Below, piece by piece: positions 890 to 60,413 of a stretch of DNA of 64,000 bases. The first letter of the stretch is position 1; every line of letters starts with the position of its first letter. The translations under genes and the position numbers were made by a program. Origin of the DNA: Thalia democratica. Lineage: Eukaryota. The notes beneath the pieces were generated by a model, which was given only the letters and a program-made list of their open reading frames with translations, made no database searches and was not told the DNA's origin. Location: positions 58,032,001 to 58,096,000 of the forward strand of contig OZ241832.1 in assembly GCA_965202585.1 (NCBI GenBank). Direction: 5' to 3'.

Positions 890-1059
890 CCTTCTTTGGT
901 CACTGTGACATCATACACCCCTTCGGCCAGCAACCGCCAAAAATCCCCGTCCGCCGCTGACGTGACGTTGTGGGAAATTCCCTTCACCGAAACAACTGCT
1001 CCCTCGATGGGCTGCTTGTCGGTTGATGACGTCACGAAACCGTGCACCCCCTGGTTGAC
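890..1059 (-). CDS. CPD: CPD exon 15 (VNQGVHGFV...GDFWRLLAEGVYDVTVTKEG); the gene continues beyond position 1
   Basis: GD[FY]WRLL..G.Y.VT motif; 170 nt like exon 7; cag / GG|gtgatt. No downstream exon confidently found in 1-889. Confidence 0.93.
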
Positions 1060-4000
1060 CTGTGAAAATAAAATATTTGACCTGTGAAAATAAAACAAAC
1101 TAAATAAATAAAAAACAATTTGAGTGAAAATTAATAGACTGGAAACAAAAAGTGTGGTAAAAATTTGTGACTTTTATTTTTTGAACACTAAAAAAAATTA
1201 AAAATAAATATCTTGGGGGTATTACAATTGATAAACAAATCAAACATCTTAAATGACTAAATAAACAATATCAATGTATTACTAATAATATAATATAACT
1301 GTATTTTTGTTACTTTCTTCTATAACAAAGCATATATAAAAAATATGAATCACTAAAGTAATGTAATATTTGCAATTTATCAAAGTAAAATTATCATAGA
1401 CACTTAAATCAAGTTAGTTTTATATTCAAACATGTAACTTTGAGATCAACTTTATTTAAATATACTTTACGTTAACTTTTATTAACAAAAATATAGACTT
1501 TTTTAAAGTTTTAAATTAATTTATTCTATGAAATTACGATAAAAAAACACAATAAAAATAAATACTTATGAAACGTTTACTGGAAATCTTGATAAAAACC
1601 CTACGAGGCAGCAGATTGCCGAGGGAATCAATAAATTTAATGAGGTATTATTTCAAAATCAATATTTTTTTATTTGGTATTTCATCATATTTTACCTGCG
1701 ATCGATCGGATTTTGTTTGCCGCCGAAGGTTAAGAAGCAAGATAAGTGAGTTATAATAAAAAAAACAAACAGAACAAAACGAAACAACAAACAATCGCTT
1801 TCAGTTTGCAGAGGAAATCCTGTTAGGTCACGTTTGCTTACGTTTGCTTGTTCTATTTTTTGGTCAAAATTAACTAAACTGTTAATTTTATTGCAAATTT
1901 TAAACTTTTAACTGTTTGTTTTTTTGCTTAACATTTAATTTTAATATTTTTATTTTGTACTTTGTTGTTAAAAATTTACTTACTTTTTAAATTTGAATAA
2001 CTATTTAATTAAATTGAATTTAGTTGTCTTATGCATATTTCTAAATTGGTTGATAAAGTAATTTGTAAATTTTAAAAACAAATATTGTATTTATTTTTTT
2101 TTTAGCTTTAAAACTGTTTATCCATTGATCGAGTTTTTAAACAAGGATAGCACTAGATATATTGTTGTTTTTGTTTTAATACAATAATACACAACTAATA
2201 CTATTTATCAAACAAATTCAGTGTTTAAATATTTTTTGTAGTAAGATGTAAATATAAAAACTATCAATGTTGTTAAAAAAATAAACTTTTATTAAAAAAA
2301 AAAATAAACTAAATAAAAATATAAAATTATACTTAACTTAACGTCGTTAATGTTCAAGTTTAAAAATATTTTTCGACTCAAATTAGAAAATCCTACGCGA
2401 AAATAAATTCACGGCATAGTTTAGTAATTCATTACAACAACGTAATAAAATTACTGAGAGGATAAATAGTATAAAGAGCTTATATTATTAGTTCTTGTTA
2501 TGTTTGTTAACTTTTGCTAATTTTAATGTTTAACTTGTTTTCAGTAACAAATTTTTTTTTCTTAGTTTTTTTGAACACTAAAAACAAACAGTATAATTAT
2601 ATACTATATAAAAGGGTGAATAACATTATTTCTTTATACTTTCTTTAGCTAGATAAAGCTTTACTTAATTTGTAAATTTTTAATTAACTAATGTTACAGA
2701 CTTAAGCAATTTTTAAAAGTTTAATTTGAAATAGTTTTATCTGGTAACGAAATTGAAACCCATATACTAAAGTTTTTTTTCTTTTAAGTGTAAACCCAAG
2801 TCCTACACTTAACCTGGGTAAAAAGTTGTGTTCATTTGAACTTTGTATAAAAATATATTAAAAATTCGCTAACTTTAGATATTGATAAGAATTGTTAAGT
2901 TCAAGTTTAAAAACGTGATGTTTGAATCAAACCAGACTCACCTACGCAAAAACTACACTCATGTGATTATTTATTACATTAAATAGTACCAATGCATATA
3001 AATACATGTTTTGTAAAAGTCTTTTACGTATAAAAGCTGTAAAGATGTAAAATTAAATTTTAATACTTTTCAAATTGTCAACAAATCACTCAATAACTGT
3101 GTGTATGACTCTATACTATTTCTTATTCACAACTTGTCATGTTGAAATTTAAATATAATCAGTTAATTTAATGTTAAGTATAGATGTAATTGAGAATAGT
3201 ATACATTTTCTAATTTAAAAATAAAAGTAGATTTTATTTTTGATGAAAGTAAACGTTTATTTTTAATACTGTTATACTTTAAAGTTTTTATAAACAAACT
3301 AAAGATTTTTTCCTAATAAGTAATAAAGACTTATACTTGCTAGATGTACTCCAGTACATTCAAAAAAATTTTTTATCATAAATTACTCTTTTAAGAAGAG
3401 AAAATCAATATCAAATTTAGCTTGAAAAACGTGTTTCAAAAGCAGCTGCTGAGACTTTTGAAAAAACAAAAAACTGAGTTTTGAAAACTACTGACATTTC
3501 TAGTGTATTCAAAACAAACTGGTGAAACTTAAAAGCATCATTTGGTATAGTTGAAGTTTTTATTTTTAACAAAAAAAAAATTAGTTAAAAGTATATGATA
3601 TTTTGTACACAAAGCTTCTCTTTGTCTATTTCAAATGAAGATAGTACTTTAAATAATTTTGTTTTACAAGTTTTACATTTACGTGTTTGCTTTGTTAAAA
3701 AACTTTATTGCTTTTTTTATGTGTCCTCTTTTTACATGGTTTAAGATGTTTAGGGTCGAACGTAGGACAATAAAACTAATAATTAGTATATTTAAAAAGG
3801 TCGCTTTTATAAGGTTGTTGCAACTGATTAAGTGCTTAAAAAAAAATGATAAGCTCGCTTAACTTATTACCCCGAGCATAACAATTAAAATTCTTGATAC
3901 AAGACAAAAGTTTGTTTTTTTATAAATTTAAAAACTTTTTTTGTTTGATATACTTAAAATACTTCAAAATATTGTAAAACTGAAAATTGCTATTGAAAAT

Positions 4001-4076
4001 AATATGCAATTAATTATATACAAGAAGCTCAAAAACCATTAACTTTACTAAATAGCCATATTATATAATCATGTAC

Positions 4077-4219
4077 CTGCTTTATGTATTCAACCAAGGC
4101 CTTCTTGTTATCCGACCAATATTGTGGGAGAGTTTTAGCGTAGGGGAATTTGTAACAACCTAATTCCAGTGTTATTTCGAAACAGTTGGTATTCAGATAA
4201 TTGTAATCTTGCATTGAAC
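4077..4219 (-). CDS. CPD: CPD exon 14 ([25 protein letters not shown]...VEYIKQ)
   Basis: Catalytic Glu motif; 143 nt like the domain-I counterpart exon 6; cag / CAG|gtacat. Confidence 0.95.
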
Positions 4220-4856
4220 CTGGTAATTTGTTAGCAAATATTATTTTTATTGTTTTCTGGTAAAATTTATTGTTTATTTTTTTGGTTCTATTTTACTTAT
4301 TTACATTTCAAAACAGTTGGTTGTAAGATAATTGTAATCCTGGTAACTTATCGTAATTTTTTATTTAGCCGTATAATTAGATACTTTACTATTATTTTTT
4401 ACTGTGATTTTTTTTATATTACTTATAAATTACTACCTGATGTTTTATTGTTTTTTATCTGCATAATAACTATATAATTTTTTTTACAACATGTTAAACA
4501 ACTATACATACTACTGCATTTTTTTTATTTATAATTTTTTTAATACCAACAGATACTTTGCATTTTAATATCATTTTTATCGTTATTTTGTACATATTTA
4601 TACTTATGTCGTATTACTTGATATACATACAATTTAAACTTTTTTTTATCTACCTAAAATTACATCTATTCTCATTATTTTATTGTTACAATAGTTTTTT
4701 TTAAAAATTTATGTTAATTTTTTATACTTTAATACTACCTAATATTTTATTAATACTTTATTTTATTTTTTTCAACTACCTAATATTGTATTTTTTTTTT
4801 TTTTTGTTGTAATTCAAGACATTTTACATTTTATATTAATATTTTTTTTCAACTAC

Positions 4857-4896
4857 CTGATATTGAATACCACTCTGCTCCGTTTGTTATTCCTTC
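4857..4896 (-). CDS. CPD: CPD exon 13, 40-nt microexon (EGITNGAEWYSIS)
   Basis: GITNGA.WY motif; cag / G|gtagtt; phases match neighbours. Confidence 0.92.
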
Positions 4897-5289
4897 CTGT
4901 AAAAATATTAAATAATTGTAATTATAAATACTAAAATAGTTTAATAAATGTGTGGTAATAAGGTTATAATTTATTTATTTCTGAAAAAAAAATTAATATT
5001 TTTAATCATATATATATAATTTTTCAAATAATTTAAAAAAGGTGTAGAGATATGGGTAAAGTTCATTTCTTCCAGAATAAAAAAAAATGTATTAAAACAA
5101 AATAATTAAATTCATGTGTGTTAATATAGTTTATAGTTATTTCTTTTTGAAAAAATACTAACAATGGCAAATGAGTAATACACAAAACACAAACGCATAG
5201 TAATAAGATGTTACACCGTGATAAGTTATACTAAAACATTTTCTTCTTGAAAATACTTTGTCACTGGTCTATGAGTAAATTCTTCTTGA

Positions 5290-5640
5290 TTTTCTGATCT
5301 TTTTCCAGATTTTTAAAAGTACACGTTTTTGGGTCAGTTTTTAAGTTTAAAATTAAGGTTAAGGTTAAAAACTGTGTTAAGTAGTATAACAACATTAAAA
5401 AGATACTGTAAAGCTACTTTAAATGTGTTTTTAAAAAAATAAGTTTTTAATGGTGACAACATTCTTTTATTTATATGATAAATTTTTTGTTTCAAACCAA
5501 AATTTTAATACTTAACATGTGAAAGTTGTTTAAAATTATAGATTTTTCCAGGTTTTTCAGTGGTTTTTCTTCAAAATTCCAGGTTTTTTCAAAATTTCTC
5601 AAATTCAAGGTTTTCCGAGGATTCCAAGTTTTGTGGCAGT
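5290..5640 (+). mobile_element. hAT-like MITE family A, decayed copy in CPD intron 12
   Basis: Collinear with the 16352 element (aagtttaaaattaag, aaaactgtgtt, tggtgaca, ttccaggttttt blocks); TIRs eroded. Confidence 0.6.
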
Positions 5641-7982
5641 ATGATAAATATGAAAAAATTAAGAGAAGCATATGTGGCAATTAATTCCAAAAATCCGTTG
5701 TTCCTCACTCAAAAATTGTAAACAAAAAATTAATTTTAGCATGTAAAAAAAGAATGAAAATTCGAACATAAATTGACAAATAAAAGTCTGATAATAAAAG
5801 TGCCAAATAAAACATTAAGCAGTTTAAAGAAAAACCTTTTAAATGTTTAGCCAAAAATAAACCAAACCGCAACTTAAACACACCTTTATTAGCTGTGTAA
5901 GTACGCTCACGTAAAAAACAAATAAAACTAATACTTTTCCGCATAAAAAGTCGGCACTTGCGTGAAAATTTAAGTTATAAATTAGTAGGTTAGCAAAAAT
6001 TTTACTTGACGATAAAAGTACGTACAAAAATAAATTTCAGAATTCACATATTTTAACTTATTTATTCGAATTTTTCTTTTTAATTTACACCTTTCTGCCA
6101 TTGAAAGTAACTTTTTTCCTCAAACTTATCAAAATCGTTATAAGTTTTATTTTATATTCAAACAATATTATTTGCCAATATAAGTACACAAAAAACATTA
6201 CACACCCCTGCAAGCATTTCTCTTGCAAATACGCAAACAAGACATTACTTTTCACATTTCATTTATACTTTATTAGTTAACGCATTACACCAACGGGTGC
6301 TTTTACTTAGCAGGTTTATATAATCTGCAATAGCAAGCGTACTTATTAGCACATGATTTTTAATGAACCTACGATTTTTTTAATTAATGTCCTTATAAAT
6401 ACACGTTAGAATGAAAAATAAACTTCACCTTTGTGAATTCAAGATTACTAAATTTTACTTGCATAAAATTTTAAGCGTAATTTTGGATGTTTTACAAGGA
6501 CTTACAAGTTAGATTGGAAAGGTAACTTACACGTTTTTTATTCCATGTGGAATAAATGTTTTTGGTGTTTAATTTTTTTTTAATATTATTTTACTATTTT
6601 TAATGGGGTAATTAACGTTTTGAGGTGGAGCTTTCGGACAAGCTTTTGTTTTTTGTAAAACTTTTTTTTATAAGACTAAAGCTTCACAAGATGCGAGATA
6701 ATATAATAAAAGTTAGACTAAATAATAGAAAGAATATTACTTTATGTTTAAATAAGTATTTTAATTAATGAATTTAATTGCCATACTTTTATTAATTGTC
6801 ATTTATTTTTTAAATAGTCATTTCATGAAGAGTTATTTAAAAAAAAATTATAAAACTTTATTTACATATTGCATTAAGATTTTTTTCAAAATGTTAAAAA
6901 AAGTTACATAAAATTATTATCTAACAAAAAGTTAATAAACTTTAAAGCTTAATTAGTTTTTACTTTCTTTTATTTGAAACTTTTTTAATAATAAAAGTTA
7001 AAGTTTATTTTTTGACTATTTTGGTTAACACTCTTATGTTATTATTTTATTTTTAATTAACTTTGAAATGGATATATTGAACAGTCAACTAAAGCAAAAA
7101 GGCAAAAACTCTTCCATACTGTAAATATTAAAAATATTCCATCCATTTAATTAATGAAATTTTCCAATAACTCACAGTAAAATGTTTGTTGTCACTAATT
7201 AATCATTTAATTTAAATATTTCAATTTTTATTAAACTCACAATGAATTTTTTGTTGTTAATTTTAAATCAACAAATATTTTTTTTTAACTAACAGTGAGA
7301 TAATTCAAATTTAATTTTTTATATTTTATTTATTTTGAGTGAAATGCTACTTTAACTAATTTTTATTTCATTCTTTTCTTAACTAAACTCCTAGATTTTA
7401 TTTTTAATTGTTTAAATTACTACTATTTTTATAATAAAAACAACTCACAGTGAAATTTTGATAAGTAGCTAATTAATTTTTATTTTATTTATTTATTTTA
7501 ACTAACATTGAAATGCTCGTTGTAGCAAATTTTATCAATCTTTATTTAACTAATACTTATTTTATTTTTTAATTAATATTTATTTAATTATTTAGTATTA
7601 TTATTTTCTAATGTTTTAACTCACAGTGAAATGCTCGTTGTAGCAAATTTTATTAATTTTTATTTATTTTATTTTTTGACTCACAGTGAAATGCTCGTTG
7701 TAGCAAACTTTATTAATTTTTATTAAACTAATATTTATTTTATTTTTAATTAATATTTATTTAATTATTTATTATTATTATTTTCTAATATTTTAACTCA
7801 CACTGTAGCAATTTTATTAATTTTTATCTATTTTTATTAATTTTTATTTATTTAACTATTTATTATTATTATTTTCTAATGTTTTAACTAACAGTGAAAT
7901 GCTCGTTGTAGCAAAATGGTTATTCATTATTTTAATTTTTTGATAATTTTTAATTTTTATTTATTATTTTTATTTAACTAAC

Positions 7983-8147
7983 AGTGAAATGCTCGTTGTA
8001 GCACGGGTTTCCTTTCCACATGGTGGCGTGGTTCACCGAGTACTCACGTGACAAATGCTTGAAAGTGACGTCATCAGCGCACACTTGCGACCCCTTGCGG
8101 CGGTGCCTGTCGAGCGGGGAGTACTCGTCGTACGGGTAGTTGGCCAC
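7983..8147 (-). CDS. CPD: CPD exon 12 (VANYPYD...ADDVTFKHLSREYSVNHATMWKGNPCYNEHFT)
   Basis: VANYPYD, DDxxF and H..M..G.PC motifs; cag / ACT|gttagt; 165 nt, phase 0 to 0. Confidence 0.95.
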
Positions 8148-8599
8148 CTGTTGCCATGGCGATGAAAAAATAAGTTTTTTCGTTTGAAGTATTTAGTTAA
8201 ATATTATAAGTGTCTTTTTTTTTGGGGAAATATTTCTTTTATAAATAATTTTAGTTTTTCTAACCTTTTGGTTTACATTTCTCGATTATAAAATGTTTTT
8301 AGTTTGAAGTTTGATTTTTTTTATTATTGACTAACTAAATTGTTACTAACAGTTGTTGTTACAGTTTAAGTTTTATTCTTTTTTTACTTAAAATGTTAAA
8401 TATTTTTTTTACTGAAATTAAAATTTGTGGTCATTTAGATGAACCACAATTTTGTTGAAAATCATAAGACTAATATACATCAATAAAATTTTGTGTTTTG
8501 AAACTTTTTGTTAGTCATTACAAATAAACTAAAACAAGACTTGTATTACGTATTTAATGAACAAAAACTTACTTGGAACAAGCGATCAAAACAAGATAT

Positions 8600-9480
8600 A
8601 AGCAAAAGTAATTTTTTGTAAATAGTTTATTCTAAGAACTGTTTTTAAAATGTAAGCTTAATTCTTATAATAAAAAGCAAGATAACAAGAGTTCAATTAC
8701 TTATATTGGCACTCAATACAAACTTACTTATAAGAAAAAACTATTATTCTTTAAGAACCAATAAAACATTCTAACAAATACTTAAATGCCATTTAATTAA
8801 CTTATATATATTATTATAGGGGTAGTAAGAGTATTGAAACAAGTTAATATTACATACAAATATAACTGAATACAAACTAACGAGACTTACGTAGAAGAAA
8901 AACTAACATTCCAATAAGTAAAAAAAAGTTATTAAATTAACTTAAATGATAGGAGTGTTGCAGTAAACTAATATTACATATTTGATAATAACAAAGGCTT
9001 TTAACAAGGAAAACAACGCAGATCAGCATTCAGCACAAACTAATTTGAAATAAACAACCAAAACAAAATGTTAGCAAAATGTTTTTTATAAATAGTTTAT
9101 TCTAAGAACTGTTTTAAAAATTTAAGCTTAATTTTTATAATAAAAAGCAAGATAACAAGAGTTCAATTACTTATATTGGCACTCAATACAAACTTACTTG
9201 TAAGAAAAAACTATTATTTTTTAAAAACCAATAAAACATTCTAACAAATACTTAAAAGCTATTTGACCAACTCAAATGATAGGAGTATTGAAGTAAACTA
9301 ATATTACATATTTAATTGCAAACAAATAGTTGATTTTTTGTAACTTTTGTATACTTAACAAAAAACTAACTAACAAGAATTTAATTAACATGCTAATAGC
9401 TGTAAAAAGTTATTAAAATAACTTAAATGATAGGAGTGTTGAAGTAAACTAATATTACTTATATAACTAAATACAAACTA
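8600..9480 (+). repeat. Nested tandem duplications filling CPD intron 11
   Basis: ~180-bp block at ~8615-8790 repeated at ~9085-9260; aaatgataggagt.ttgaagtaaactaatattac at ~8944, 9274 and 9424. Confidence 0.88.
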
Positions 9481-9482
9481 AC

Positions 9483-9663
9483 GAGGCTTCCGCCGTGCAA
9501 ATTAGCACTCAACACGAACGGGTACTGGTGCAACCAACCGATGACGTTCCTGGTTTCCGCCTGCATCGCTCCCTTCTGCAGGTTGTACTGGTCGGGAAAG
9601 TTCCTGTTCAGGTCGAAGTTCAACCCGTTGCTCCTGCCGCGACTCGAGGACCTGTCTCCCTCG
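9483..9663 (-). CDS. CPD: CPD exon 11 ([12 protein letters not shown]...[10 protein letters not shown]...[12 protein letters not shown])
   Basis: Hand translation gives DLNRNFP and [12 protein letters not shown]; cag / CTC|gttagt; 181 nt. Confidence 0.95.
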
Positions 9664-10479
9664 CTGCGTTGTTTTAATATTTTATTTTAAATAAGGTTCT
9701 TTTTTACTTGTTTATGTAAATTTATTTAATTCAAAATACTTCTACTTTGATGCTTTAAGTTTTTTTTTTGTTATATGAGTGTTTTTCGTGGTACAATACA
9801 CTAGCAAATCTGGTATACTAAAGACGTTGTTTTTTTTTGTGTGTAAAATTTTTGATTCCAACAGTCTGTTTTTGGTCTTTCATTTTAAATGATTTCTTAT
9901 AAAAAAGAAGAATACTAGTTAAAATGTTTACTGTTTGTTCAGGGTTTCATGACAATTCACATTCCTAAAAAATCTTTAAGAAACCACAACTTTAAAAGTT
10001 ACATATTTTCAAAAGAATCAAAAATGCTCATGCAGGTCTAAGTAATAAGATTATGATTTTAATATGCTAAAGTTAATAAACATTTTTTAATAAAGATAAT
10101 AAACAACAACCTAAAAATATTAAATTTCTTTCCCAAACAGTCATGCACCCATTCTTAGCTACTGTATTTTTTTATTGAAAAAAAAACGTAACCGTCAGGG
10201 TTTGTTACAAGTAATGTTCTATTTAATTGATAATCATATTTCTTAATCTCTTAAATATTTTTTTTAACTTTTGCAAACAAATTACAACATTCAAACCAAG
10301 CTCTTTATAGATTTTTCAATGTTAAGTAATGTTTTTTTATATCTCAACTTACATCTTATCTATTAAAAAATGTCGACAAATTCATTGCATTGTTTTATTG
10401 AGTAAAAATATTTTTAAAAATACATAAGTCTTTAAGACTTTTTAGCACAAGTAAGTAAATAGAAAACTTAAGAAGGTAA

Positions 10480-10626
10480 AAAGATATTACAGTAAAGCAT
10501 ATACATACAAGTTTTAAAGCTATATAAACGTAAATTACAATAATAAAAGCTATGAAAACGTTTGAAGAAAAATATAATTTATATAGCTATAAAACTTGTA
10601 TGTATATGCTTTTTTGTAATATCTTT
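10480..10626. other. Long inverted repeat (hairpin) in CPD intron 10
   Basis: Arms 10480-10528 and 10578-10626 are reverse complements with about 3 differences. Confidence 0.88.
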
Positions 10627-10819
10627 ATACCACCTTAATATTTCAATTCATCTACTTATGCATATAAATCTTGTGTGTTTAATTTTCACAAAATTCTTAT
10701 CTTAACAGTATTTATTCCTTATTTTTTATAAAACTCATTATGACGTATCCATTATCTAGCTTTTGTACATGTTAGTATTATATTTCATGGCTTACTTCAA
10801 CACAGCAGTAGCTGATAAA

Positions 10820-11160
10820 TGTGTTTTGAAAAATATTTTCTACTTAATAAAACAACGCAATGAATTTTTCGACATTTTTTATAAAAATTTGTACCCCGTG
10901 AAAGATATTTAAAACTTTTTATTTATTTGTTTATTTATTTATATTTATAACATTTTGTTAAGTTATTTTTCGAACAAAAAAACAAAGTTAAGTAATATTT
11001 AAATAATAAGTGTGTTTTGAAAAATACATTCCACCTAATAAAACAACGCAGTGAAATTTTTTATTAAGTAGATTTTTATTTAATAATATAAATTTAATAT
11101 TTACATTTTTTATTAAAATTTGTACCCCGAAAAAATCATTTAACATTTTATCTAATTTTA
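10820..11160 (+). repeat. ~190-bp tandem duplication in CPD intron 10
   Basis: tgtgttttgaaaaata...taataaaacaacgca...aaatttgtacccc repeated at ~10820-10910 and ~11011-11130. Confidence 0.85.
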
Positions 11161-11182
11161 TCAACGAAAATAAAAAACAAAC

Positions 11183-11369
11183 ATCGCGACTTCGTAGCCG
11201 TCGGGATTCATGCTGGGCATCAGGTGGATGCGGGTCGCGTCCACCACCCTCTTAACGTCGTCTATGACGTCATAGTTGACCAGCAGGTACTCCATCAGGT
11301 TCAGGATCAGCTCCCTGCCGACCACCTCGTTGCCATGCATGTTACCCACGTACTTGAACTCCGGCTCGC
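11183..11369 (-). CDS. CPD: CPD exon 10 ([19 protein letters not shown]...[17 protein letters not shown])
   Basis: Canonical [18 protein letters not shown]; cag / AT|gtttgt; 187 nt. Confidence 0.96.
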
Positions 11370-12346
11370 CTGCGAAATTCATTTTATTTATTTATTATTA
11401 AAAAAATTAACAGTTTAGCGTGTTGTTATTAATTAATTGCGATGTAATTTTTGCTGTTTGCTTTTAAACAATTAAAAAGTTAATTTTTTTTTGCTCGCCT
11501 GCGAAATTTATTTAATTTATTTATACTTATATATATTTATATATAAGTATTATATAGTGTTTATTATTATATGTATTTATATTGTAATTTGATTGCAAAG
11601 AAAAACAACTAATAAGTTTTTATATTGACGTATGTTTTTTTTTCGAACAAATATTACAAGCTTTAATTATTTTTTATTTATTTACATGCTAAGTAAGCTT
11701 TTTTTTTGCATATTTCATATGTATTTGAATTTCGACTCGCCAGGAAATTTATTCATTCTAATATTTATTTATTTCAGTATTTTTATTGTTAGCGATGTAA
11801 ATACATAACTTTTTATTTGCTTTTGAACAATATTTTTTTTTTTGCACATTTTTTCATATACATGAATTCTGGCTTCCTTGTTAGGTGAAAGCTTTTTTTT
11901 ATAACTTGAGGTTTTCATTATTCACAAAGTAAAATATTATAAGTTTTAAAATTGGATTTTTGGTCCGTAACCATCTTTTATTAAAACTAAACGCTTTCAT
12001 ATACTTCCTTTACAATAACTTATTTTGAAATTTATAAGTGTAGAGAATATTTTAAAACTAATACTACCAAATTAAAATTAACTCTGCAAAAATTTATTTA
12101 AACAAACCGGTTCGGTTAAAACTTGGGTTATCAGATATTTAAATCAAAAAAATATATAATAATTCTAATTTTAAACTTTTAAGTGTCAAGTATACGAGAC
12201 ATGAAAAAATAAATTATTTTTGTAAAAATATACTAGGTTCGCGAGCGCCTACTACCTAGGTAGTGTAACAATTCGCTTTAAGTTGTTATATTAAAGATTA
12301 TACTGCTAAATAGTTAAACAAATAAAAAATATTAATCTCAACGTAC

Positions 12347-12538
12347 CCGGTTCGTGCGTTCCCGGGTTGTCTGATATTTCCATCACCCACTGCTCTCTAC
12401 CGCCCACTGCGGACTTGCCCACCGAGTACATCCTGGTCAGATGGGGGTATTCCCCGCTCAACCGCTTCATGAATGACGTCATCGCGACGTAGTCGTGGTG
12501 ACGGAACTCCGAGGGTTCGATCGGTTCTTGCACATGTT
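12347..12538 (-). CDS. CPD: CPD exon 9, start of domain II (HVQEPIEPSEFRHHDY...YSVGKS...MEISDNPGTHEPG)
   Basis: F.HH.Y, YS.GKS and EISDNPG.HEPG motifs; cag / G|gtacgt; 192 nt. Confidence 0.95.
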
Positions 12539-15500
12539 CTGTTTGTTGGTAATATAAATTAATTAATTTAACTGTGAAAATAAATTAAAACTTAGTAATT
12601 GTGTTTTTAAAATAATATATATATAAATAGTTTGAAAAAAGACAAACCTTGTGACAATTAGTTTCAAATAAAAACAAATTTAATGCCTTGTGTTATTTGT
12701 TCTGTTTGAGTAATATAATACTTTGAATAAAAAAATTAAAAAAAAACTTTGGTGTTATATGTAATATATATAAGAAGCAATAAATTTAAGCTAAACTTTT
12801 AAAAACAACAAACAAATGTTAAAAACAATTGATAGAAAATTTTTATCAGTAAAAACTAACTTAGCATATTTTAAAAAATACAGGAATTTAGCTGTGTATT
12901 TGTTATTTTTCCATGTGAAAACAATATTTATTTAACATAACATTGGTTGATAGTGTTTAAATATTTGCGGCTAAAAACAAATAAACTTTTATGGTGACTT
13001 GGTTATAACTTTAACTGGAGCAGCTTAAATTAAGTAGTAAGAAATAAATGTTTATATTACCTGTATACAAAAAAAACACAAAATAATTGAAATTAAATTC
13101 ACCATAAACTATTCAAAAAATTAATATAAGTTATAATAAATTTTGTTAATTGCAAACAAAATACCATGCAAAAAACTAAATTATTCCCGTAGAATGGGGT
13201 TTTTTTAAATAAGCAGTTTTAATTTTTTTATAGTTGCTAACTTTTGTATATTTCATTATTAAGAAATTAAAAAAAAAAACTCGTTTAAATTGTAAATTAC
13301 AATTTATTATAATCAAATAGCAAAATTTTAACAACAAAAGTAATTAACTATTGTTTTATTTGAAATATTAATATAAATAACTTTAAGTGGTATGATTATA
13401 AGAAGCTACTTATACATACTTATATTGTGCTATTTTGACATATCCTATTTTAATTTATATATATGTATGTAAGAACTCATTCACATAAGTCTCATAATAG
13501 AATAAGTAATTTGAATTTAGGGAAACAAGAAACTTGATCATAGCTATAATGTACAAAATAGTTGAGAAATCTACAATAAATAACAGTGATCTCATACACC
13601 ACAGTTTGATTTATTTTTCCTAATTTTTTAAAACTTAACCTGACTAAAATAAACAATAACACTACAAGGTAATCATAACTAAGTTCTATTAAATACTTGT
13701 GCATATTTTAATCGTAACTTGAACATAGTTTGTTACATACTGGCAGTTTATCATTTCTGATAATAAAACAACTTGCATATAAATTTAAATATGTTTAAAC
13801 TATTTGTAACACTGAAGCACATTTATATTGACCACAGAAATTTACATTGTAGCTTTACTTTCCAAATAGTATTAGCAAAAATTAGTAACCATTTTGGCTA
13901 TTAAACAGCTTAAAAAATTAATCTAAATTATATAACTTTCAAACTATTTTTGATGTATATTTAGTACCTATATAATATACTTAATTTAACTTTTAAATTA
14001 ACTGTACTGTAAAAGGTTGCAGGTTATTATTTAAAAAAATATTTTTTAAATTTTGATCGAAAATTTAAGTAGGTGTAATATTTATGTATTGTTTAGCATA
14101 GATTTTACATTACCAATAATAAACATTTAAATACATTAAAAAAAGTTTTAACTAAAAGGGAATCTACTTTTAAATGTTTTTTTAAAACTTTTGATTAATC
14201 ACGCATGCAAATATATATTTTAATTATCAGGTTTTTTTTCGTATTTAAACAGTACGAATGATAAACATTTAACTTTTTTAATAATCTAATGTTTAGCAGT
14301 GCCTCAAATATAAGAGTTTTATCTTTAATTATAACTGTAAAATAAAACTACTCTCAATACTCTTAATAATGAAAATGACTTCATCATAAAGTTAATTAGT
14401 TCTTTTAAAATTTGCTCATTTTTTACAATAACACATACTTAACAACTTTATAACATAGGACTTTAAAAACATTAATACCATATTATATATTATAATATTA
14501 GCCAATAGTGGTTATCAATAATAAATGTTTATTATTAACCGTATTAGAAACAGCTGTTTATTATAACTTGTTTATAAATTTTATAAACAACATATACAAC
14601 AAGCTCCGTGAAAGTGATGATTTATTTTAAAGTGTAATGATTAAACATGCAACTTTTACAATTATTTTTATACAAAACTTAATATTTTCATAAGTAATTG
14701 AACAATAAAAAGTTTAAATATTTCAATATAAGTTGATACATGGTTTGTAAAAGTTTAAGTAAAAAAAGAACGAATTCATTAAGGCTAGATGATAAGCTTG
14801 TATGATTATATTTTTAGAAAATATTCAGAATACAAAATAATGTTTAATCTCTTTTAAGTGTTAACAATGTAAAACGAATGCATAATTTTTTATATATGGT
14901 AAACACTGTAGTCATGCAATGCATAAACAAATCATAAAAAACTTGAAAAAATTGGCATAGAATGTATTGGAAATAATGTAACTGAATTTGAAGATGTATG
15001 AAGAATTAAATTATTAGTAATGAAACTGATTGAAAATAAAAATTGTTAATAAAAATGAATATATGTGAAGCGAACTTTTTCTACAACAGTTTCGACTTGG
15101 TGAGCCTGTTTTTGAAAACATGTTGGAATTAATTTATTTCAAATAGTAAATGAAATAATAAATAACAACAAATATTATTTGCTACATTGGTTCAAAGTGG
15201 TAAACACTAAAAACTTTAAAAGAAAACAATATTTGTCTTAGTTTGGTGTTAGTCTGTTTTACGACTTTATCTAAATTTATCTACTTTAGTAAAAACAAGC
15301 TTGTTTAAAAAAGATTAGTGTTTTTTAAATAATAGTATTAACACTTTACAGTTTTTTTCAAATTAGTGAATAACAAATTTAAGATAAATAAAAGTTAAAT
15401 CTAATGTGTATTTATTTTCAAACAAGCAAGCAACACTGACGAATTCTACAAGCAAAGCGTATATTATTACACGAAAAAATAGTTTTATTTTTTATAATAA

Positions 15501-16351
15501 AGGATATAAGGACTTATTAATAAACATTACTCGTCATTGTCAATTACATTAATAAACGTCTCTATATAATTGATTGGTGGTTTAAATCTATTACTTTCTG
15601 CTAGGTACCAGAATAAATTGTATCAATGCTTTGAAAATGTTTAATAATAAACATAATCATTTTTTATAAAATATTTGTCCATTATTATTATAACAACTGT
15701 TTAAAAAATACTATCCATATAGTAATAAAGTTATGAAACACTTAATTATATATTTAGAACTGTGTTACTTAAATCAGCTAAAATGAGAAAATACTTAAAC
15801 TTATTAAGTTAATTTTGCTTACTTACTTACTTAAATGAGTTAATTATGTTTTTACATTTATAAAATTATGGTAAACATAAGACTATAATTATAAATTATC
15901 TAATTTTCGTGTATTAAAACTAAGCTGCACATGAAATATTAAAACTACTCTCAAAATTATATGTGCATTTTTTTCAAAATTAGTTAAGTTTCTAATAATG
16001 AGCTAGTAACACTTTCTATATTAACCAGTAACGTTCGACTCAATACTTCGCTTGTGTTTTCTTTTGTTACGATGACGTTTTACTGTGATGTCATAATCAT
16101 AATACAGTAATTACGTAATACAGTGATTAAAATGCTATAAATGCTATTTTGTAAGCTTTATATTTTTTGTTTTGTTAAAGTTTAATTTATTTACTTATAA
16201 GTTTTTTTTTTGATACTTTTCATCAAAATACATTAACGTAAAAAGATTTAAAACCAACCATTTGCCAAAGCTTTATTTTTTTTCGGATTGATGAATTTTT
16301 GTAAATAGTATAAAATTCTCACTTAACTCACGTTAATAAAAAAAAATACTT

Positions 16352-16769
16352 CAGGGTTGCCAAATGTTTTTGGCAAATTTTCTCCAGGTTTTCAAAATTT
16401 CTTTCAAGTTTTTTAAACCATACGTTTTTTGGACTATTTTAAGTTTAAAATTAAGTTTTAGGTAGAAAACTGTGTTTAGTATAACGACATAAAAAAAGAT
16501 ATATTAAAGTTTCTATAGATATGTTTTTAAATAAAAAAACTTGATGGTGACAAAAAAAATAACTATACAATAGATTATTTGTGTCAAATCGAAGTTTTAC
16601 TACTTAACATACAAAAGTTGTTTTAAACTCCAGGTTTTTCTAGGTTTTCTGGTTATATTTGATCAAAATTCCAAGATTTTTAGTGATTTTTGTACAAAAT
16701 TCCAGGTTTTTATTCAAACATTCTCAATTTCAAGGTTTTTCCATGATTCAAGATTATTTGGCAACCCTG
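16352..16769 (+). mobile_element. hAT (Blackjack-like) MITE, family A, in CPD intron 8
   Basis: TIRs CAGGGTTGCCA / TGGCAACCCTG; internal sequence shared with the 5290-5640, 45455-45604 and 48463-48841 copies; no clean 8-bp TSD seen. Confidence 0.75.
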
Positions 16770-17473
16770 TTACTTAAACTAGTTATTAAATCGTTGATAT
16801 ATTTTTGTCAGGGTTTGCCAAAAAATTTTTCATTATCACACTCTTGGCAAAAAGATTTTTTTAAAACAATCAACCCCTTTTTATTAAATGTTTGATATAC
16901 TAGTCAATTACCGATTTTTTCTTTTTCTCTCTTCTACTAGCCACCTGCCCCTAGAGACCCACTTTAAAAACCCTTGGTTAATGAAATGATAACATTAATT
17001 TTGTCTATGAAGATGATATATCGAAAAAGACGTGAGTAAAAATGTGTAATTTAAACTTAAATATCAGTCCTAAGCATTTTTTCTTAATTTCACTTAAGCA
17101 AAGTATACTTTTTCTTTTAATCATACCTAAAGTTGAATATTAAAAACCAAGTTAAAATTATTGATACACCAAGCTAAAGAGTAAGACTTTATCACTGCCC
17201 TAATTTTAAAAGTCACCCACCCCCCTTATTATTCATTGTCCACTTTATGGGCGATTTTAGTAAAATGGAGGCAATACCGAAGTCTTTAGTTTAAACGATT
17301 AATGTATTAAACAAAATGTACATTGTGATTTTTGTATACACCAATCCTCACAAAATTTAATGCTCTTAAATTTTACATTTATATAACTCAACTTAAAATA
17401 AGCTAATTCTAGCATAACTTACATTATAGAAAAACACATTAGTTTTCGGTTACAATTTAATAAAAACACGAAC

Positions 17474-17547
17474 CTTGTTGGAGCTGAACATTGTCAATCA
17501 CATAGTTGTCGTCGGGAACGTAAATGTTTCTTTTTACCGTCTTGTAT
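17474..17547 (-). CDS. CPD: CPD exon 8 (YKTVKRNIYVPDDNYVIDNVQLQQ)
   Basis: The open cag...G|gttcgt block (phase 2 to 1) I found that bridges exons 7 and 9 in frame; 74 nt; fits the GY...V...F/V-x-L end of the transthyretin-like fold. Confidence 0.82.
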
Positions 17548-20196
17548 CTGCAATTGTATTTATTCAAAAACTTTCAAAAGTACTTGATTAAATTTTATTA
17601 TTTAATAACAATATATTTAAGAATAATTTAAAAATAAAAAATATATATTAGTTTTTATCATAGATTGCGTTTACTTCGTTTTAAATTCTCTAAGGCATGT
17701 TTCAAGATAAATTAAAAGTAGAATAAAAGTTTAAGCATGTGTGAGTTCAAACAATTGTTTTTTTTTTAATTTTTTATATAAAGTTATGCAATTTAAAACA
17801 AAAAAATCAAAGTTGTAATCACGATATAAAGTTTACCATTGAAGTTAACCCGAATGTATATATATAATCATTATACAACATCAATTTTGCTTATAGTCAA
17901 AAAGCTTGAATAAATATGAAGCTAGTTTATATTTACATACAAACTTGACTGATGAACAAAATTAATAAAATAATAAACTGAAATAAATACTTCATCTATA
18001 TGACCTCACAAGGAAAAATATTTCGAACTATTGAAAAATCAAAATTAATGTCGATATTAGTAAATAATTTATCTAAATAAAAACAATTTTGTGCTTGGGG
18101 AAAATAAAAACTGAAATTTTAAAGAGAAAATATTTTTTTTAAATGCACATGTAAGCCAGGTAGGTATTTATAAGATTTCATGCAAAATTATACTGACATT
18201 TATGAGCCTCATTAATAATTAATAGTTGCGTCATAATGCGAATGTCGTCCGCTTTTTTAAAATCACGGATCCGTACATAATGCGATTTGCGATTTACAAG
18301 GTGGAACTTCTGTGTGCAAAAGTACATAATATTATTTTATTATCAAACCCATACATTCTATTAGAAGTTATGAAGTTTACTTGTTAAATGTGATTTGTGA
18401 TTTTTAAGCTTGGTTCAGAGAAAAAACGACTTTTGTGTATATGCTTAATTATAAAACATTTTGTGTTTATGTTTTCTTATAAGTTTGGCTTTTTTTCGGT
18501 CAGATGTTTCTGCTTATAACACGCGTCGTAATAAAGATTTTTGTTTACTTAATGTTAGACTTCATACATTGTTATAGCATTATTTTTCAAAATGTAAAAT
18601 TTACTTTTTTAATGATTATTATTTTATACGTATAAAACAGTTTGAGTTTAGTTTTATATGTTTTTAAACCCAGGCTAACTGTATATTGTTTTGTTTATTA
18701 TAAATAATTTTATAAAAATTATTTGATATTTTCTTTCAATAACCCTGTATTGATGTGAAATTTAATATTTGGTAAAATTAAAAACTATTCAATTTTTATC
18801 AAATAATCTGCAATATCAACATTTATTTATTTGCTTGCCAAATATCTTGTATTTAATACAATTAAAGTAATACACACACATGATTTTCAAAAACTCACCA
18901 AGTAGGTTATCATCATTTTTGATTATTAGGCGGTAATATACTTATACAAATGTAACAAAAATATACAAGACAACTTTAACTTATGTAGATTAAAAAAATC
19001 TAAAGTTTTATTTACAACACTACTTATTATAACTTAAGTGTACAACCATTAAATAGTATATTTATATAACTGCTTTAAATAACTATCATGTTGTAAAATT
19101 AATCAAAAAATAATTACTAAACAGTAAATCATTATTTAAACAATGACTATAATCTTTTAGTTTGTTTTAATACAAAACTTAACAAAAATTTTACAATTCT
19201 ACTTAATCAAAACAAAAACAAGTATAAACTTTTAAGTTATTATTTCGTTTAAAAACAATTTTGTACCAGAACTCAAATTTGAGAATACTTTCAATTTATT
19301 TCAAGTCGCAATCTAAAGAGTCTTAAACTAAAATCGTTTGCAACTTTAGCACTTAAGCAAATTGAAAAATCAATTTTTTCCAACTTAAACCAGCTAAAAG
19401 CCCTGCGTAAAATACGCTTTAAAATTTAATTAATACGTCATACCTTATTTCATGTTTTTTTCTCATAAATACTTCTCCCAATATGTGACAATGCGTACTC
19501 TTGTTAAATTTTTCATGCAAAGCACATGTAATTACTTGTAATTTTAAAAACAAATACAAAGTTACGGAATATTACAACTATGTACGCTTTCTTACAACTC
19601 AAAACGAACTTTACCTTACTTTAGAATTGAAAACAAATGATGGTAGAATATGTTTTAGGTACTTACATGCTTAAACTTTGTTTGGGTTTTAATAAACACG
19701 ATATTGATGACTGTATTTTAATAAGCTAGTGATTATTTTCAGTTCGAATAAGCAATAAAACCATGTTTTGCTCATAAATACAACATTATATTTCACTTTT
19801 GGTAATTAAGTTTATTTAAAAGGAAACTTACTTCTGAGTTAACACAATCGATTTATTTTTGACAAGCTAATTTATTATAAAGTTCTTCAACTAACTGCTC
19901 AACAAACATGCGTATAATTTTCAATTAAGTTTTGTGCATGCCATACCATAATCTTGTTAATGAAATAAAAAACTAAAATGTATTTGATCAATTTTCTCAT
20001 GAGAAACAACAAAACATTTCATTTTAAAGTAACGTAATCGGGCTATACTTTTATTTATTTAGCAAAAAAAGACACAGAACTTCAATGATCAAACTGCCTA
20101 AATAGTATATAAAGTATAAGTTTTATTCTATTAATTCAATAAATTTAAATAAAAATTAATTAAAAGCCCATAAAATCATAAAATATATACACGAAC

Positions 20197-20366
20197 CCCT
20201 TCTTTTTGTATGTGACGTCATAGTCCTTCCCTCCCACCAGCATGCGGAAGAAGTTGCCAGTGACGTCAGTGGTGACGTTGTACTCGATACCGCCCACCTG
20301 CACTGTGACGTCATCAAGCGGGTTGTTGTTGGCGTCGACGACCTGACCCCTGACTCCCCTGTTCGC
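20197..20366 (-). CDS. CPD: CPD exon 7, transthyretin-like subdomain (ANRGVRGQVVD...GNFFRMLVGG.DYDVTYKKKG)
   Basis: Typical GVxGxV...GxFxRxL...YxVT pattern; cag / GG|gttcgt; 170 nt. Confidence 0.93.
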
Positions 20367-24306: not shown

Positions 24307-24519
24307 TTGTTACTGGTGATCCAGTCCATCATCAGCTTCGTCTCCTTCTCGTACTCCCTTCCCCTCCTCTCCTCCTCCGTGTCGAACTGATCCGGAAAGT
24401 TCCGGTTGAGGTCCACCTCGTTCGCGTTCTTCCTCCCCACGTACCCCGCCAGCGACTCGCACCTGCCTTCCTTCGACGCCTCGAAACCGTCGGGGTTCAT
24501 CGACGGCAGCAGGAACAGT
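24307..24519 (-). CDS. CPD: CPD exon 3 (LFLLPSMNPDGFE...[10 protein letters not shown]...WITSNK)
   Basis: PSMNPDG and DLNRNFP motifs; cag / AA|gtttgt; 213 nt, phase 2 to 2. Confidence 0.95.
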
Positions 24520-25666: not shown

Positions 25667-25890
25667 CTTGTGTTGTTGAGTATGTTGATGGCATCACTGT
25701 CACCTCCTTCATACAGCAGATATTGGGCCAGGTAGACGATGAGCTGCCTGCCAACCGTCTCATCACCATGCATGTTGCCTACCAACTTCACCTTTGGTTT
25801 CCATGGTGACTTGTTATTGACCTGATTGGTCAGTTCCAAGTAGATGAGTTTTCTGCCCTTGACAGATGTACCTATGTCTCCCACGCGTGC
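25667..25890 (-). CDS. CPD: CPD exon 2 (ARVGDIGTSVKGR...KLVGNMHGDETVGR...NNTR)
   Basis: Zinc ligands in the HGDE motif; acceptor cag, donor AG|gtaaca; 224 nt, phase 0 to 2. Confidence 0.95.
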
Positions 25891-41911: not shown

Positions 41912-44208
41912 ATGAAGGATAAAAAAGTTCATGAAAAGTTCCCAAGCGCAGAGCTGGAGCAGTGCGTCAAAAGACCCATCCTTATTGAAGAGGTGGCGAG
42001 AAAAGCACAGCTGAAAATAACAGAGGCGTGCGAGGACGCCATACTGACCCACCTGCAGTGCAAAGACCCCAGCAAAAAAATCAAAATCAAACTGAACAAC
42101 GGAAAACTGCAGCTGGTCTTCAAAGGCAACGGCAAGGAGAAAAAGTTTGAGCTCAACGAGAGCGAGCAGACAAAAATACTGAACGTTTGGAAGTCACACT
42201 TTGTCGTGGGAACGTGCTCTGTGCTGAAGGACATCGGCTCAGTCCAGCACAAAGTTCAGGTCAGGGGAAACAACGAGGCTTTTCTGTCCACTAAAAAGAA
42301 GGTCAAGTGCGCGGAGGCGGAGTCCAAGAAGGTGACAATGAAAGTTTTGAAGGGGAAGGTGGGCAAGAAGAGCCAGATGAAGTCAAAGGTTGTCAGGACA
42401 ACCAAGCATCTGGTGCCCACTGAAGTTGAAAAAGACTCACCTTTGTCTAATTCATTTGGTGGTTTGCAGTTTCCCACCATCAAAAGGCCTGTTAGTTTGA
42501 TAAAAAACTTGAATGCAAGCTTGCCAGTTAGCAGGAAGAGGAAAGGAGGGTTGGACACAAAACTGAAAAGATTTGAGAGCCACCTGAGGGCGCAAAACTC
42601 CGGCTACCCGCTTGCCAAAGTCAAAAAGCTCGAGTCAGAATTGCTGAATCACCCAGCTACAAAAAAGAAGACCATCCCAAAAAGTCCTCAAAACGCGACG
42701 CAGAACGCCAGCCTGATGAAAAGGCAGCTGTGCCACCTGGCCATAGTGCGACCCACTTCAAGGAGAAACCTGATGGACAAGCTGAAGCGGCTGAAGACGG
42801 AGAAGCCCTGGTCTTTCAAGGAAACCGACAAGCAGAACTTGATCAACAGGTGTTTGGAAGAAGTGTGCACCCTGATACCTGAAACTCTTCAGTACTGTCT
42901 GAAGAAGCAGTACTACTGTTTTGTGTCTGCTGATTGGCCAGAGTACACTCCGCAGAACAAGAAGATTGTCAAAAAGAAGCTGAATGAGTACTTTTCTTCC
43001 AAAGAAGTGAAACAGGAGATCAAAGAAGAAGTTGAAGATGAAATGCCTAAGAAAGCTTCTGCAAAGACTCTGCCCAAAAAAGCTTCAACAAAGGCTCTAC
43101 CCAAAAAATCTTCATCAAAGGCTTTGCCTAAAAAATCTTCATCAAAGTCCAAGAGTAACTCTGACAACTCGCCCAAAACTTACAGCAATGACTTTCTATC
43201 TAAGAACTTTGGCAGTTTTCTTGACTCCGCTTCCAAACCTGTGGAAAAGACAAAGTACAAAAAAAAGCAGTTTATCTCAAAAGTGCAAGCCAAGAAAAAT
43301 GCTATTGGTTTTGATGAAACTGGTAGTTCTAGCCAAAGCAGCTCTCAGTCGTCTAGTGTAAACAGCATGAATGAAAAGAGTGCAGATCATATTGATGTTG
43401 TTGAAAAAACACCCTCTCAAAATAATTTTGCTACAACAGATTCAGTATTACCATCTGCAAATGTCCAAAGCAACAAAGTAAATGAAAATGTTCAAAGGAA
43501 AAAACAAAGTGTCCACGTAGAAGAAATGATGTCAACGGCTTGCACTAGCAAAGAAGTCATGACTGAGACGACAATTGACAATCTTGTAGAATGCAGTATG
43601 GATTCGAGTGAGCTGTCACCTGAAACAAACAAGATGACAGTTGAAACAAGCGAAGAAACCATCACCAACACTCCCTCTGAAGTCACAAGCAGCCAAACCT
43701 CCCAATCAAGCATGAGTCCCACTAAGAAGGTCAAAAGCAAAGGAAAGCTCAACAACATAATTAAAAAGATCACTCAAAACCTGCATCTGAACGCCAATGA
43801 AGCCAGTCAAAACAACAGTGAACGGACGTGGGAATTTTTGACGAGGCAGCCATCAGCACATGTCTCCAAGGAAAGTAAAATAAATAAAGTGAACAACTTC
43901 ACGCAGCTCCTTTCACCAGCTGTATCCAGCCAAAGTAAAACTAAACCCACCAGAAAAAGCCAAAACAGTGCGCTTTCACCAAGTGATCAAACCAGTCCTT
44001 GCACCACAAACGGCCACCAGAGCCTCCCTTCAAAGCCAAGCTCGCCCGAAATACCTCCAGAGAAAATGATCAGCAAAAGGATAAATGAACTGGAGCAATC
44101 AAACCATGATCCAACGAGGGAAGATTTCACTGAGATTGAAAACTTGGATCAGTATTTGGACTACAGGAACTGGTTTAACAAGGAGCATCCAACGTATAAC
44201 AATTACAG
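41912..44208 (+). CDS. ELL: RNA polymerase II elongation factor ELL, coding exon 1 (N-terminal ELL domain, central winged-helix-like region, S/K-rich linker, start of occludin/ELL domain)
   Basis: Recognised similarity to ELL: LKITEACEDA (VKLTDSAL), IGSVQHKVQV...KCAEAESK (LGSIQDKITV...AQAEEETR), HLAIVRP...DWPEY (HLLALRP...DWPGY), YRNWFNKEHPTY (YKNDFNAEYNEY). Donor AG|gtattt at 44209; acceptor tgcag just upstream of the ATG. Confidence 0.88.
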
Positions 44209-44473
44209 GTATTTATTATTATTATTTGTTGTATTTTATGTTTTGTATAAAAATTAAGAATTTTGCCCGGGAAAGTTGTTTCAGCGCTCTAAAAGCTTAT
44301 TTCAGCCAAGTTTTTTATTTAACAAAAAGCAATCTTATAAGTACAACAACAAAATTTTACAACATTGTATATTCCGTAATAACAGTAGTACATTTTAAAC
44401 AAAACTACCAACACAGTTTTAATATAAATTGTTTTGCATAATTCAATTTGTTTAATACTAATCAAATTTACAG

Positions 44474-59989: not shown

Positions 59990-60413
59990 CATCAGTATTT
60001 TATCGCCGACCCGCACTTTCCCCTCGGCCGACCCTCCCTTCTGCACCCTCATTATCACCACGCCACTTTCGCCCATAAATTCCCCCGAATCGTGAACGTG
60101 GATGCCGAACGTGGGCTTCTTCACCAAGCACACCCGCACTATCTCCACTTTGCGCGGTTTCTTCGGCGTGCTGCTCTGTGACGTCACGTGCGGGTTTTGT
60201 GACGTAACGCGCGGGTACTGAGGGTCAACATGTTTCTGTGACGTGACTGGTTTGTTTTGTGACGTCATACGGTTGTTTTGCGATGCAATGTAAGGGTTTT
60301 GTGGCATGTGAGGTGAATTTTTTGTCATCACACTACGACTTTGTGACGTAGTTTGCGGACTTTTGGCGGGAACTTTTTGATTTCGCATTCCGTTCGGCTG
60401 ATGATAGTTGTAG
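59990..60413 (-). CDS. PDZ-domain protein exon with VTSQ repeats and the first part of the PDZ domain (VRVCLVKKPTFGIHV...VIMRVQKGGSAEGKVRVGDKILM)
   Basis: PDZ carboxylate loop FGIHV, I.RV..GG.A.G..RVGD.IL; tag / ATG|gttggt. Confidence 0.88.

Follow-up and report, generated by a model that had tools for sequence, protein, structure and literature searches.

The octamer TGACGTCA, known as the cAMP response element (CRE), is the canonical site of CREB/ATF basic leucine zipper (bZIP) dimers, whose monomers contact 5-bp half-sites. In fission yeast the sequence ATGACGT forms the M26/CRE meiotic recombination hotspot, which is bound by Atf1-Pcr1. In the present study, a stretch of 64,000 nucleotides from Thalia democratica (contig OZ241832.1 of assembly GCA_965202585.1, positions 58,032,001 to 58,096,000; in the following the window) was analyzed. 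Perfect copies of TGACGTCA were found repeatedly in the coding exons of two genes in the window, one encoding carboxypeptidase D (CPD) and one encoding a PDZ-domain protein.

The repeated word shares several features with a CRE. The 8-bp palindrome is identical, with 17 exact copies of the core in the window, the full palindrome and not the half-site is enriched, the central CpG is kept, and the purine/pyrimidine flanks match the half-sites contacted by the bZIP monomers. Two-fold symmetric recognition, with preference for the full site over the half-site, holds in the sequence. The location, however, does not fit. CREs described so far occur in low number per gene, in promoters and enhancers near transcription starts, whereas 17 of 17 copies in the window lie in coding exons, many per gene, and alter the protein. 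Judged by sequence and location, the copies would not be classed as ordinary CREs. The M26 hotspot has the same core inside coding sequence and acts on DNA via an ATF/CREB dimer, but no sign of GC-biased conversion was found here (intron flanks of 13-24% GC), and hotspot motifs tend to erode and not to accumulate. Exonic splicing enhancers, too, overlie coding sequence and are found preferentially in exons and not in introns, and the exon enrichment holds here with 17 exonic copies and none in introns or intergenic DNA. Such enhancers are nevertheless degenerate, strand-specific, short and close to splice sites, in contrast to the exact and symmetric 8-10-mer of the window. Strand-specific, single-stranded recognition does not hold, as mismatches and flanks are both symmetric.

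Duons and exonic enhancers are regulatory DNA words in coding sequence that constrain codon choice (e.g. PMC13216554). There, many factors are involved, their density is modest and the protein is only weakly affected, whereas a single word shapes the peptide here, at about one copy per 150-270 nt. HIP1 (GCGATCGC) is the highly iterated palindrome of cyanobacteria, an 8-bp CpG-type palindrome which is hyper-abundant in genes beyond the expectation from codon usage, retained in relatives and without a known function (PMC5861425). In the window, too, one palindromic octamer occurs far above codon-aware expectation and is retained among relatives more strongly than neighbouring synonymous sites. 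The genome-wide spread of the cyanobacterial palindrome is not shared, and HIP1 is bacterial and has another sequence, whereas the present word is the canonical site of a eukaryotic transcription factor in a subset of the coding exons of an animal with introns. By analogy, HIP1 would be the nearest relative as a phenomenon. Full-text literature searches returned no paper describing an enrichment of TGACGTCA in exons, and no exon-restricted iterated palindrome was described for eukaryotes in the literature searched.

Copies of TGACGTCA and their excess over codon usage

An exact search returned 17 perfect copies of TGACGTCA in the window, against 0.27 expected from dinucleotide shuffles (shuffle maximum 2). 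The window has a GC content of about 25%, with short CpG-rich islands of 45-60% GC. All 17 copies are located in coding exons, seven in CPD and ten in two exons of the PDZ gene, where they span positions 60179-63269 (Table 1). CPD was modelled on the minus strand by chaining GC islands in a frame-consistent manner with canonical GT..AG borders. The initial annotation had placed seven copies in CPD coding exons, read as VTS, DDVT, YDVI, MTS, YDVT, TDVT and DDVT, together with a half-site run near 959. The search recovered every one of these coordinates, the exon model and the Pfam domains Peptidase_M14 and CarboxypepD_reg agreed with the placement, the same peptides were read in the model and the half-site run was present. 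As a total for the window, the count of seven was too low, since ten further copies lie in the PDZ gene. The absence of perfect copies from introns, intergenic DNA and the ELL gene, also claimed in the initial annotation, was confirmed. In the 53.2 kb of non-coding-like DNA (23% GC) 0 copies were found against 0.08 expected, which is far from a density comparable to that of the exons, and the CpG-poor ELL exon of 2.3 kb contained none. One-mismatch words were present in the non-coding-like DNA (12 versus 5.9 expected), TGATGTCA and TGACATCA among them, and none of the 12 had the perfect form.

Table 1. Coding exons of the window that carry TGACGTCA, and the ELL exon used for comparison
Feature	Positions	Strand	Copies and remarks
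CPD exon, second CarboxypepD_reg domain	890..1059	-	TGACGTCA at 1027-1034, read GTG ACG TCA (V-T-S)
One-mismatch copies in CPD exon 890..1059	906 and 958	-	
CPD exon, M14 domain 2	7983..8147	-	TGACGTCA at 8066-8073, read GAT GAC GTC ACT (D-D-V-T)
CPD exon, M14 domain 2	11183..11369	-	TGACGTCA at 11265-11272, read TAT GAC GTC ATA (Y-D-V-I)
CPD exon, start of M14 domain 2	12347..12538	-	TGACGTCA at 12474-12481, read ATG ACG TCA (M-T-S)
CPD exon, first CarboxypepD_reg domain	20193..20366	-	Copies at 20213, 20261, 20306 (Y-D-V-T, T-D-V-T, D-D-V-T)
ELL coding exon, internal negative control	41912..44257	+	0 copies; GC content at third codon positions (GC3) 0.52; CpG observed/expected 0.46
PDZ-gene exon	59990..60397	-	Perfect copies at 60179, 60260; one-mismatch copies at 60200, 60239
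PDZ-gene large exon, disordered region	62066..63303	-	Copies at 62138, 62233, 62459, 62767, 62848, 63067, 63136, 63262

The excess was examined with synonymous shuffles, in which codons were permuted within each gene so that the protein and the codon usage of the gene were kept (5000 shuffles), and with a stricter shuffle that also kept the third-base/first-base dinucleotides at codon boundaries. The seven copies in CPD compare with 0.62 in the synonymous shuffle and 1.38 in the stricter one, and were reached in 0 of 5000 shuffles in either case. For the PDZ exons the ten copies compare with 1.82 and 3.93, the latter reaching the observed number in 2 of 5000 shuffles. A loss of the enrichment under such shuffles, the outcome that would have refuted the initial annotation, was not observed. 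When only the order of codons was shuffled, keeping composition and not the protein, 0.04 copies were expected in CPD and 0.14 in PDZ, and the total excess of TGACGTCA over composition amounts to 50-180 fold.

The peptides compatible with the word are themselves 6-10 fold enriched over residue shuffles. Peptides of the form xDV[IMTNKSR] were found 7 times in CPD (1.1 expected) and 13 times in PDZ (1.6 expected), and [LMV]TS 3 times (0.29) and 8 times (0.95), respectively. Seven of the ten compatible peptides in CPD are encoded as the exact word. The excess has two layers, one in peptide content and one in codon choice. The choice of codon is also visible just outside the shared heptamer. Among two-fold degenerate codons with a pyrimidine in third position, T is the last base in 9 of the 11 that stand right before GACGTCA and in 76 of 285 (27%) elsewhere in the CPD and PDZ genes (Fisher P = 0.0003); this T supplies the first base of the 8-mer, although such codons otherwise favour C. 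The excess goes beyond what codon usage, dipeptide content or repeats alone can account for.

CPD is a multi-domain carboxypeptidase D, whose exon peptides match Peptidase_M14 and CarboxypepD_reg of Pfam and align to the solved structures of CPD, CPN and CPM. From these alignments it was seen which residues the word had displaced. In exon 20193-20366, DDVT replaces ENAT of human and LNAT of duck CPD, TDVT replaces TGRF and TYKD, and YDVT replaces YNLT and YKVT, respectively. The YDVI of exon 11183-11369 occupies a loop reading FGTD, DGKD or HERI in the solved homologues, and in exon 7983-8147, where the copy reads DDVT, the homologues continue after the conserved D-D with RV, KL, EV or AV. Conserved peptides of the regulatory domain, H-N-V-T-S and Y-N-V-T-T, are not the sites of perfect copies. 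On the basis of these alignments, the D-V and T-S residues of CPD are lineage-specific substitutions at variable positions.

The unit of enrichment, its conservation and its surroundings

All 8-mers were compared with synonymous shuffles in 6.7 kb of coding sequence, made up of CPD, PDZ and three PDZ orthologues. TGACGTCA ranked top with 49 copies against 5.9 (z = 18), and the other high-scoring words were overlapping sub-words of it. AP-1 and C/EBP sites, other palindromes with an ACGT core and other CpG tetramers were not enriched in this set, nor was the half-site TGACG without a following TCA (21 versus 29.5), and the full copies explained the excess of ACGT and GACGTC. The unit of enrichment is the entire 8-mer. 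It is used in both of its stop-free frames, 26 and 23 times among the 49 copies. One-mismatch variants were counted by position on the coding strand as 5, 6, 0, 2, 0, 1, 6 and 6, so that the outer two positions on each side are tolerant while the ACGT core is almost invariant.

The flanks of the 49 copies were symmetric as well, with a purine before the word in 47 and a pyrimidine after it in 46. In the frame read as D-V, codons for Asn, Lys, Ser and Arg would be equally available after D-V as those for Thr and Ile and are almost never used. An independent sample of 75 sites in long open reading frames (ORFs) from 19 metagenome contigs of other organisms gave a purine before the word in 79% and, on the complementary strand, a purine at the position after it in 83%, with a similar symmetry in both frames. 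As the flanks are symmetric in both samples and both frames, the unit is extended to R-TGACGTCA-Y (R, purine; Y, pyrimidine). This two-fold symmetry is not imposed by the genetic code.

Five relatives of the large PDZ exon were found on marine metagenome contigs, with protein identities of 95, 62, 39, 36 and 35%. Each of them carries 9-11 copies in the exon, which has a GC content near 50% between flanks of 21-31% GC. No copies were present in these AT-rich flanks, except where exon sequence runs past the called gene (contigs L002 and L004). Four to five copies occupy identical alignment columns in all six sequences and others are confined to one sub-lineage, so that the number is kept while the positions partly turn over. 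In distant pairs, identical residues are encoded by the same codon in 64-95% of cases inside the word, compared with 49-59% outside it. The PDZ copy at 60260 reads TGATGTCA in the contig of a related organism (60263 C>T), a case of turnover through a CpG transition. For CPD, conservation was assessed for one exon in one close relative, a Tara metagenome contig (L127) with 97% identity that retains the copy at 12474. The three-copy CPD exon gave no match when searched by protein words, nor by back-translated patterns in the JGI metagenomes, and a search of a large protein database gave no match for ELL. The initial annotation had presented the word as a peculiarity of CPD; the ten copies in the PDZ gene and the relatives show it to be a property of a class of exons in this genome and in related ones.

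Outside these two genes, at least 120 contigs in the JGI metagenomes were found to have three copies within about 100 bp, many of them tandem repeats. Among the matches listed were four contigs of 35-55% GC (L008, L034, L063 and L124) in whose long ORFs 7-9 copies are spaced irregularly and read in both frames, against 0.7-1.3 under synonymous shuffling. These ORFs of 279-1923 codons, in surroundings of 45-50% GC, had no Pfam domain and were rich in Ser, Thr, Arg and CpG, and the hosts clearly differ from the genome of the window. In the CPD gene region of Nematostella vectensis one exonic and one intronic copy of TGACGTCA were found, and an intronless tandem pair of CPD genes on a long contig of another eukaryote had 0 copies in 5.6 kb. 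Beside the Nematostella CPD gene, in an intron of an exportin-2-like gene (L126:1-900), a non-coding tandem repeat was observed with a unit of about 150-190 bp. Its units carry paired CRE words (e.g. gtgacgtcattgatgacgtcac), with seven perfect copies in 830 bp. Clusters of CREs also occur as non-exonic repeat families in another animal.

The motif exons have a GC3 of 0.6-0.9 and a CpG observed/expected ratio of 0.9-1.5. In the non-coding DNA of the window this ratio is 0.62, with TG and CA in excess. At the borders of the exons, GC drops from 0.55 to about 0.2 within 25 nt, and the intron flanks of motif exons have only 13-24% GC within 100 nt, no higher than the flanks of motif-free exons. 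A model of regional GC-biased conversion or a hotspot was rejected because these flanks stay AT-rich, and correction of quasi-palindromes as a general process was rejected because no other palindrome is enriched. The ELL exon has no compatible peptide of the D-V-[T/I..] type and, despite long disordered stretches, no excess of the motif. An argument on exon definition drawn from ELL was dropped, as the 2.3-kb ORF probably continues downstream and ELL is not shown to be intronless.

Two compositional classes of exons are present within the 64 kb, represented by ELL and by the motif-bearing CPD and PDZ exons. A similar contrast was observed within CPD, where the first modelled exon (25667-25890) has a CpG observed/expected ratio of 0.31 and its neighbour, 1.1 kb away, one of 1.16. 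This contrast at the scale of exons may reflect a mosaic germline methylation of single exons.

Interpretation and alternative explanations

From its exact form, symmetry, restriction to exons and conservation within the clade, TGACGTCA appears to be a selected nucleic-acid element superimposed on coding sequence. The second DNA-level code of the initial annotation stands as far as a non-protein signal over exons is concerned, on the evidence of the shuffles, the use of both frames, the T before GACGTCA, the variable positions in CPD and the distant orthologues; CREB/ATF binding, chromatin or methylation marking and splicing enhancement are candidate readings of it. Our preferred but tentative explanation is a selected R-TGACGTCA-Y element with a two-fold symmetric reader, most likely a dimer of the CREB/ATF type bound to DNA. 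The 10-bp palindrome would be selected in its own right in some of the coding exons rich in GC and CpG in this animal and its relatives, at a density of about one copy per 150-270 nt of motif exons, with CPD as one carrier among many. The word would be placed in either stop-free frame, depending on which one the protein can accommodate, altering residues at variable positions. A symmetric dimer on double-stranded DNA would account for the perfect palindrome, the symmetric flanks in both frames and the need for both half-sites, and the identity of the motif together with its symmetry suggests a CREB/ATF-class bZIP as the reader. The element might then serve as an exon-embedded mark of chromatin or transcription, tied to exons that keep their CpG, i.e. 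are presumably hypomethylated, and the link to CpG-retaining exons fits a methylation-sensitive reader of DNA. Candidate outputs are co-transcriptional recognition of exons, protection from methylation and regulated expression.

The most serious competitor, although judged unlikely, is a cis element acting at the level of RNA. An RNA-binding protein would then recognize UGACGUCA in the pre-mRNA or in the mRNA, and the site would act as an exonic splicing enhancer or mark the RNA for export, stability or packaging. Such an element accounts for the confinement of all copies to exons that are transcribed and spliced, and for their absence from the 53 kb of introns and intergenic DNA, where about 8 would be expected at the exon-like enrichment of about 100 fold. 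It also accounts for the acceptance of amino-acid changes to place copies in exons, and for a copy density that scales with exon length in the large PDZ exon. A single-strand reader, on the other hand, predicts neither the perfect palindrome nor the symmetric tolerance of mismatches nor symmetric flanks in both frames. Many exons have no copy, and the few copies in CPD show no preference for exon ends. With their symmetry, the flanks speak for a reader of two-fold symmetry and less for a conventional splicing enhancer recognized as a single strand. Pairing of self-complementary UGACGUCA copies within a transcript, folding the pre-mRNA and for instance bridging long AT-rich introns, would be another alternative at the RNA level: the motif is self-complementary, the purine/pyrimidine flanks extend the pairing of any two copies, the three-copy exon adjoins the longest CPD intron and its predicted fold pairs two of the copies. 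This is nevertheless very improbable, as the folding energy of that exon is no better than that of shuffles (z = -0.25), promiscuous pairing would loop out motif-free exons such as 9483-9663, and eight or more copies are present in a single 1.2-kb exon with short flanking introns.

An origin without any host function is also improbable, if less so than the pairing of transcripts. The word would then be a by-product of biased mutation, repair or gene conversion, visible only where GC-rich codons give near-matches, similar to very-short-patch repair skewing bacterial oligonucleotides, or to bound sites protected from decay. The restriction of the excess to the exact 8-mer would suit an enzyme-like specificity, lineages differ in the positions of their copies at similar density, and in HIP1 a hyper-abundant palindrome without a known function is already on record (PMC5861425). 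To generate an excess of 50-180 fold, however, the loss rate would have to be lower by about the same factor, the 12 non-coding near-matches remained unconverted, ELL has no excess in its long disordered stretches, and GC does not rise in the intron flanks of motif exons (0.13-0.24). Least credible of all is an ordinary effect of codon usage, of a favoured peptide (D-V-T or M-T-S) or of low-complexity repeats. CPD does use GAC, GTC and GTG frequently, at a GC3 of 0.75, Y-x-V-T and H-D/N-V-T-S are genuine motifs of carboxypeptidase regulatory domains (one is the basis of the Nematostella copy as well), and some PDZ copies lie in repeats. Yet the excess persists in every codon-aware shuffle, two unrelated peptide families in two frames converge on one DNA word, and the codon in front of the word goes against the general preference. 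Furthermore, the conserved HNVTS and YNVTT are not perfect copies, which lie at lineage-specific residues instead, and CPD genes elsewhere (Nematostella and the intronless CPD of another eukaryote) have about 0-1 copy.

Several observations weigh against the preferred explanation, a symmetric DNA element read by a dimer. Its main weakness is that introns would be the cheaper place for a mark on DNA, whereas an RNA signal predicts copies confined to exons even where the protein pays for it. A preference for Thr or Ile as the residue following D-V may contribute to the purine/pyrimidine flanks. Not all PDZ copies are independent, since some belong to degenerate tandem repeats whose number differs among relatives. 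Six or seven CPD exons, including the GC-rich 24307-24519 and 9483-9663, and three exons of the PDZ gene have no motif. The metagenome contigs, finally, were chosen for having three copies, and show occurrence elsewhere and not frequency.

In its widest form, which is held just as tentatively, the proposal is of a genome-wide second code in a lineage of marine animals and some other eukaryotes of the metagenomes. One 10-bp palindrome would be placed densely in a class of coding exons, selected over hundreds of millions of generations and rewriting protein, as a mark of exon or gene-body identity read with two-fold symmetry. If real genome-wide, this would be a clean natural case of a non-protein signal dictating amino-acid sequence. 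It would bear on the evolution of overlapping codes, on the marking of exons and gene bodies in extremely AT-rich genomes and on the reuse of transcription-factor-type words within genes. Synonymous sites in motif exons would not be neutral, so that selection tests based on codon models would be confounded, and in this clade the motif would be a near-perfect flag of exons for gene finding.

Gene structure and minor observations

The distance of the seven CPD copies to the nearest exon end is 20-97 nt, and no preference for the edge was seen in this small sample. At the border of exon 890-1059, the sequence gacctgtgaaaataaaa was observed twice after the acceptor, the second time tens of bases into the intron (window positions 1050-1100). 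The border sequence cccctgttcgcctgt, adjoining exon 20193-20366, was also present twice and is repeated into the intron (20356-20450).

Two candidate ORFs in AT-rich DNA, 30963-32030 (plus strand, 355 codons) and 52316-52747 (minus strand, 143 codons), encode Asn/Ser/Leu-rich repeats and a hydrophobic tail. They had no Pfam match and no copies of the motif, and nothing was found in an Rfam scan of the window.

The PDZ gene encodes a long disordered region followed by the PDZ domain. Marine metatranscriptome contigs join its exons at 61097>61337, 61444>61690 and 61793>62066, with CT..AC borders corresponding to GT..AG on the minus strand, and the gene is consequently expressed and spliced. The large exon contains about ten one-mismatch copies in addition to its eight perfect ones. 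In exon 59990-60397 the copies lie within a degenerate xVTSQ repeat, 5' of the sequence coding for the PDZ domain. Repeat units carrying the motif or near-matches were noted both in this xVTSQ stretch (60170-60370) and in three 12-residue units of the YDVTNKNQL type (62890-62970). One 36-nt unit (62894>62931) is missing in the contig of a related organism, and near 60205-60361 a stretch of 151-155 nt is left out in other contigs. Translation of the PDZ gene probably starts at an ATG at 63853 on the minus strand, after which a one-mismatch copy (63815) encodes C-D-V-T. A further near-match, TGACGTAA, is located at 63906, about 50 nt upstream of this ATG, in the 5' leader or promoter.

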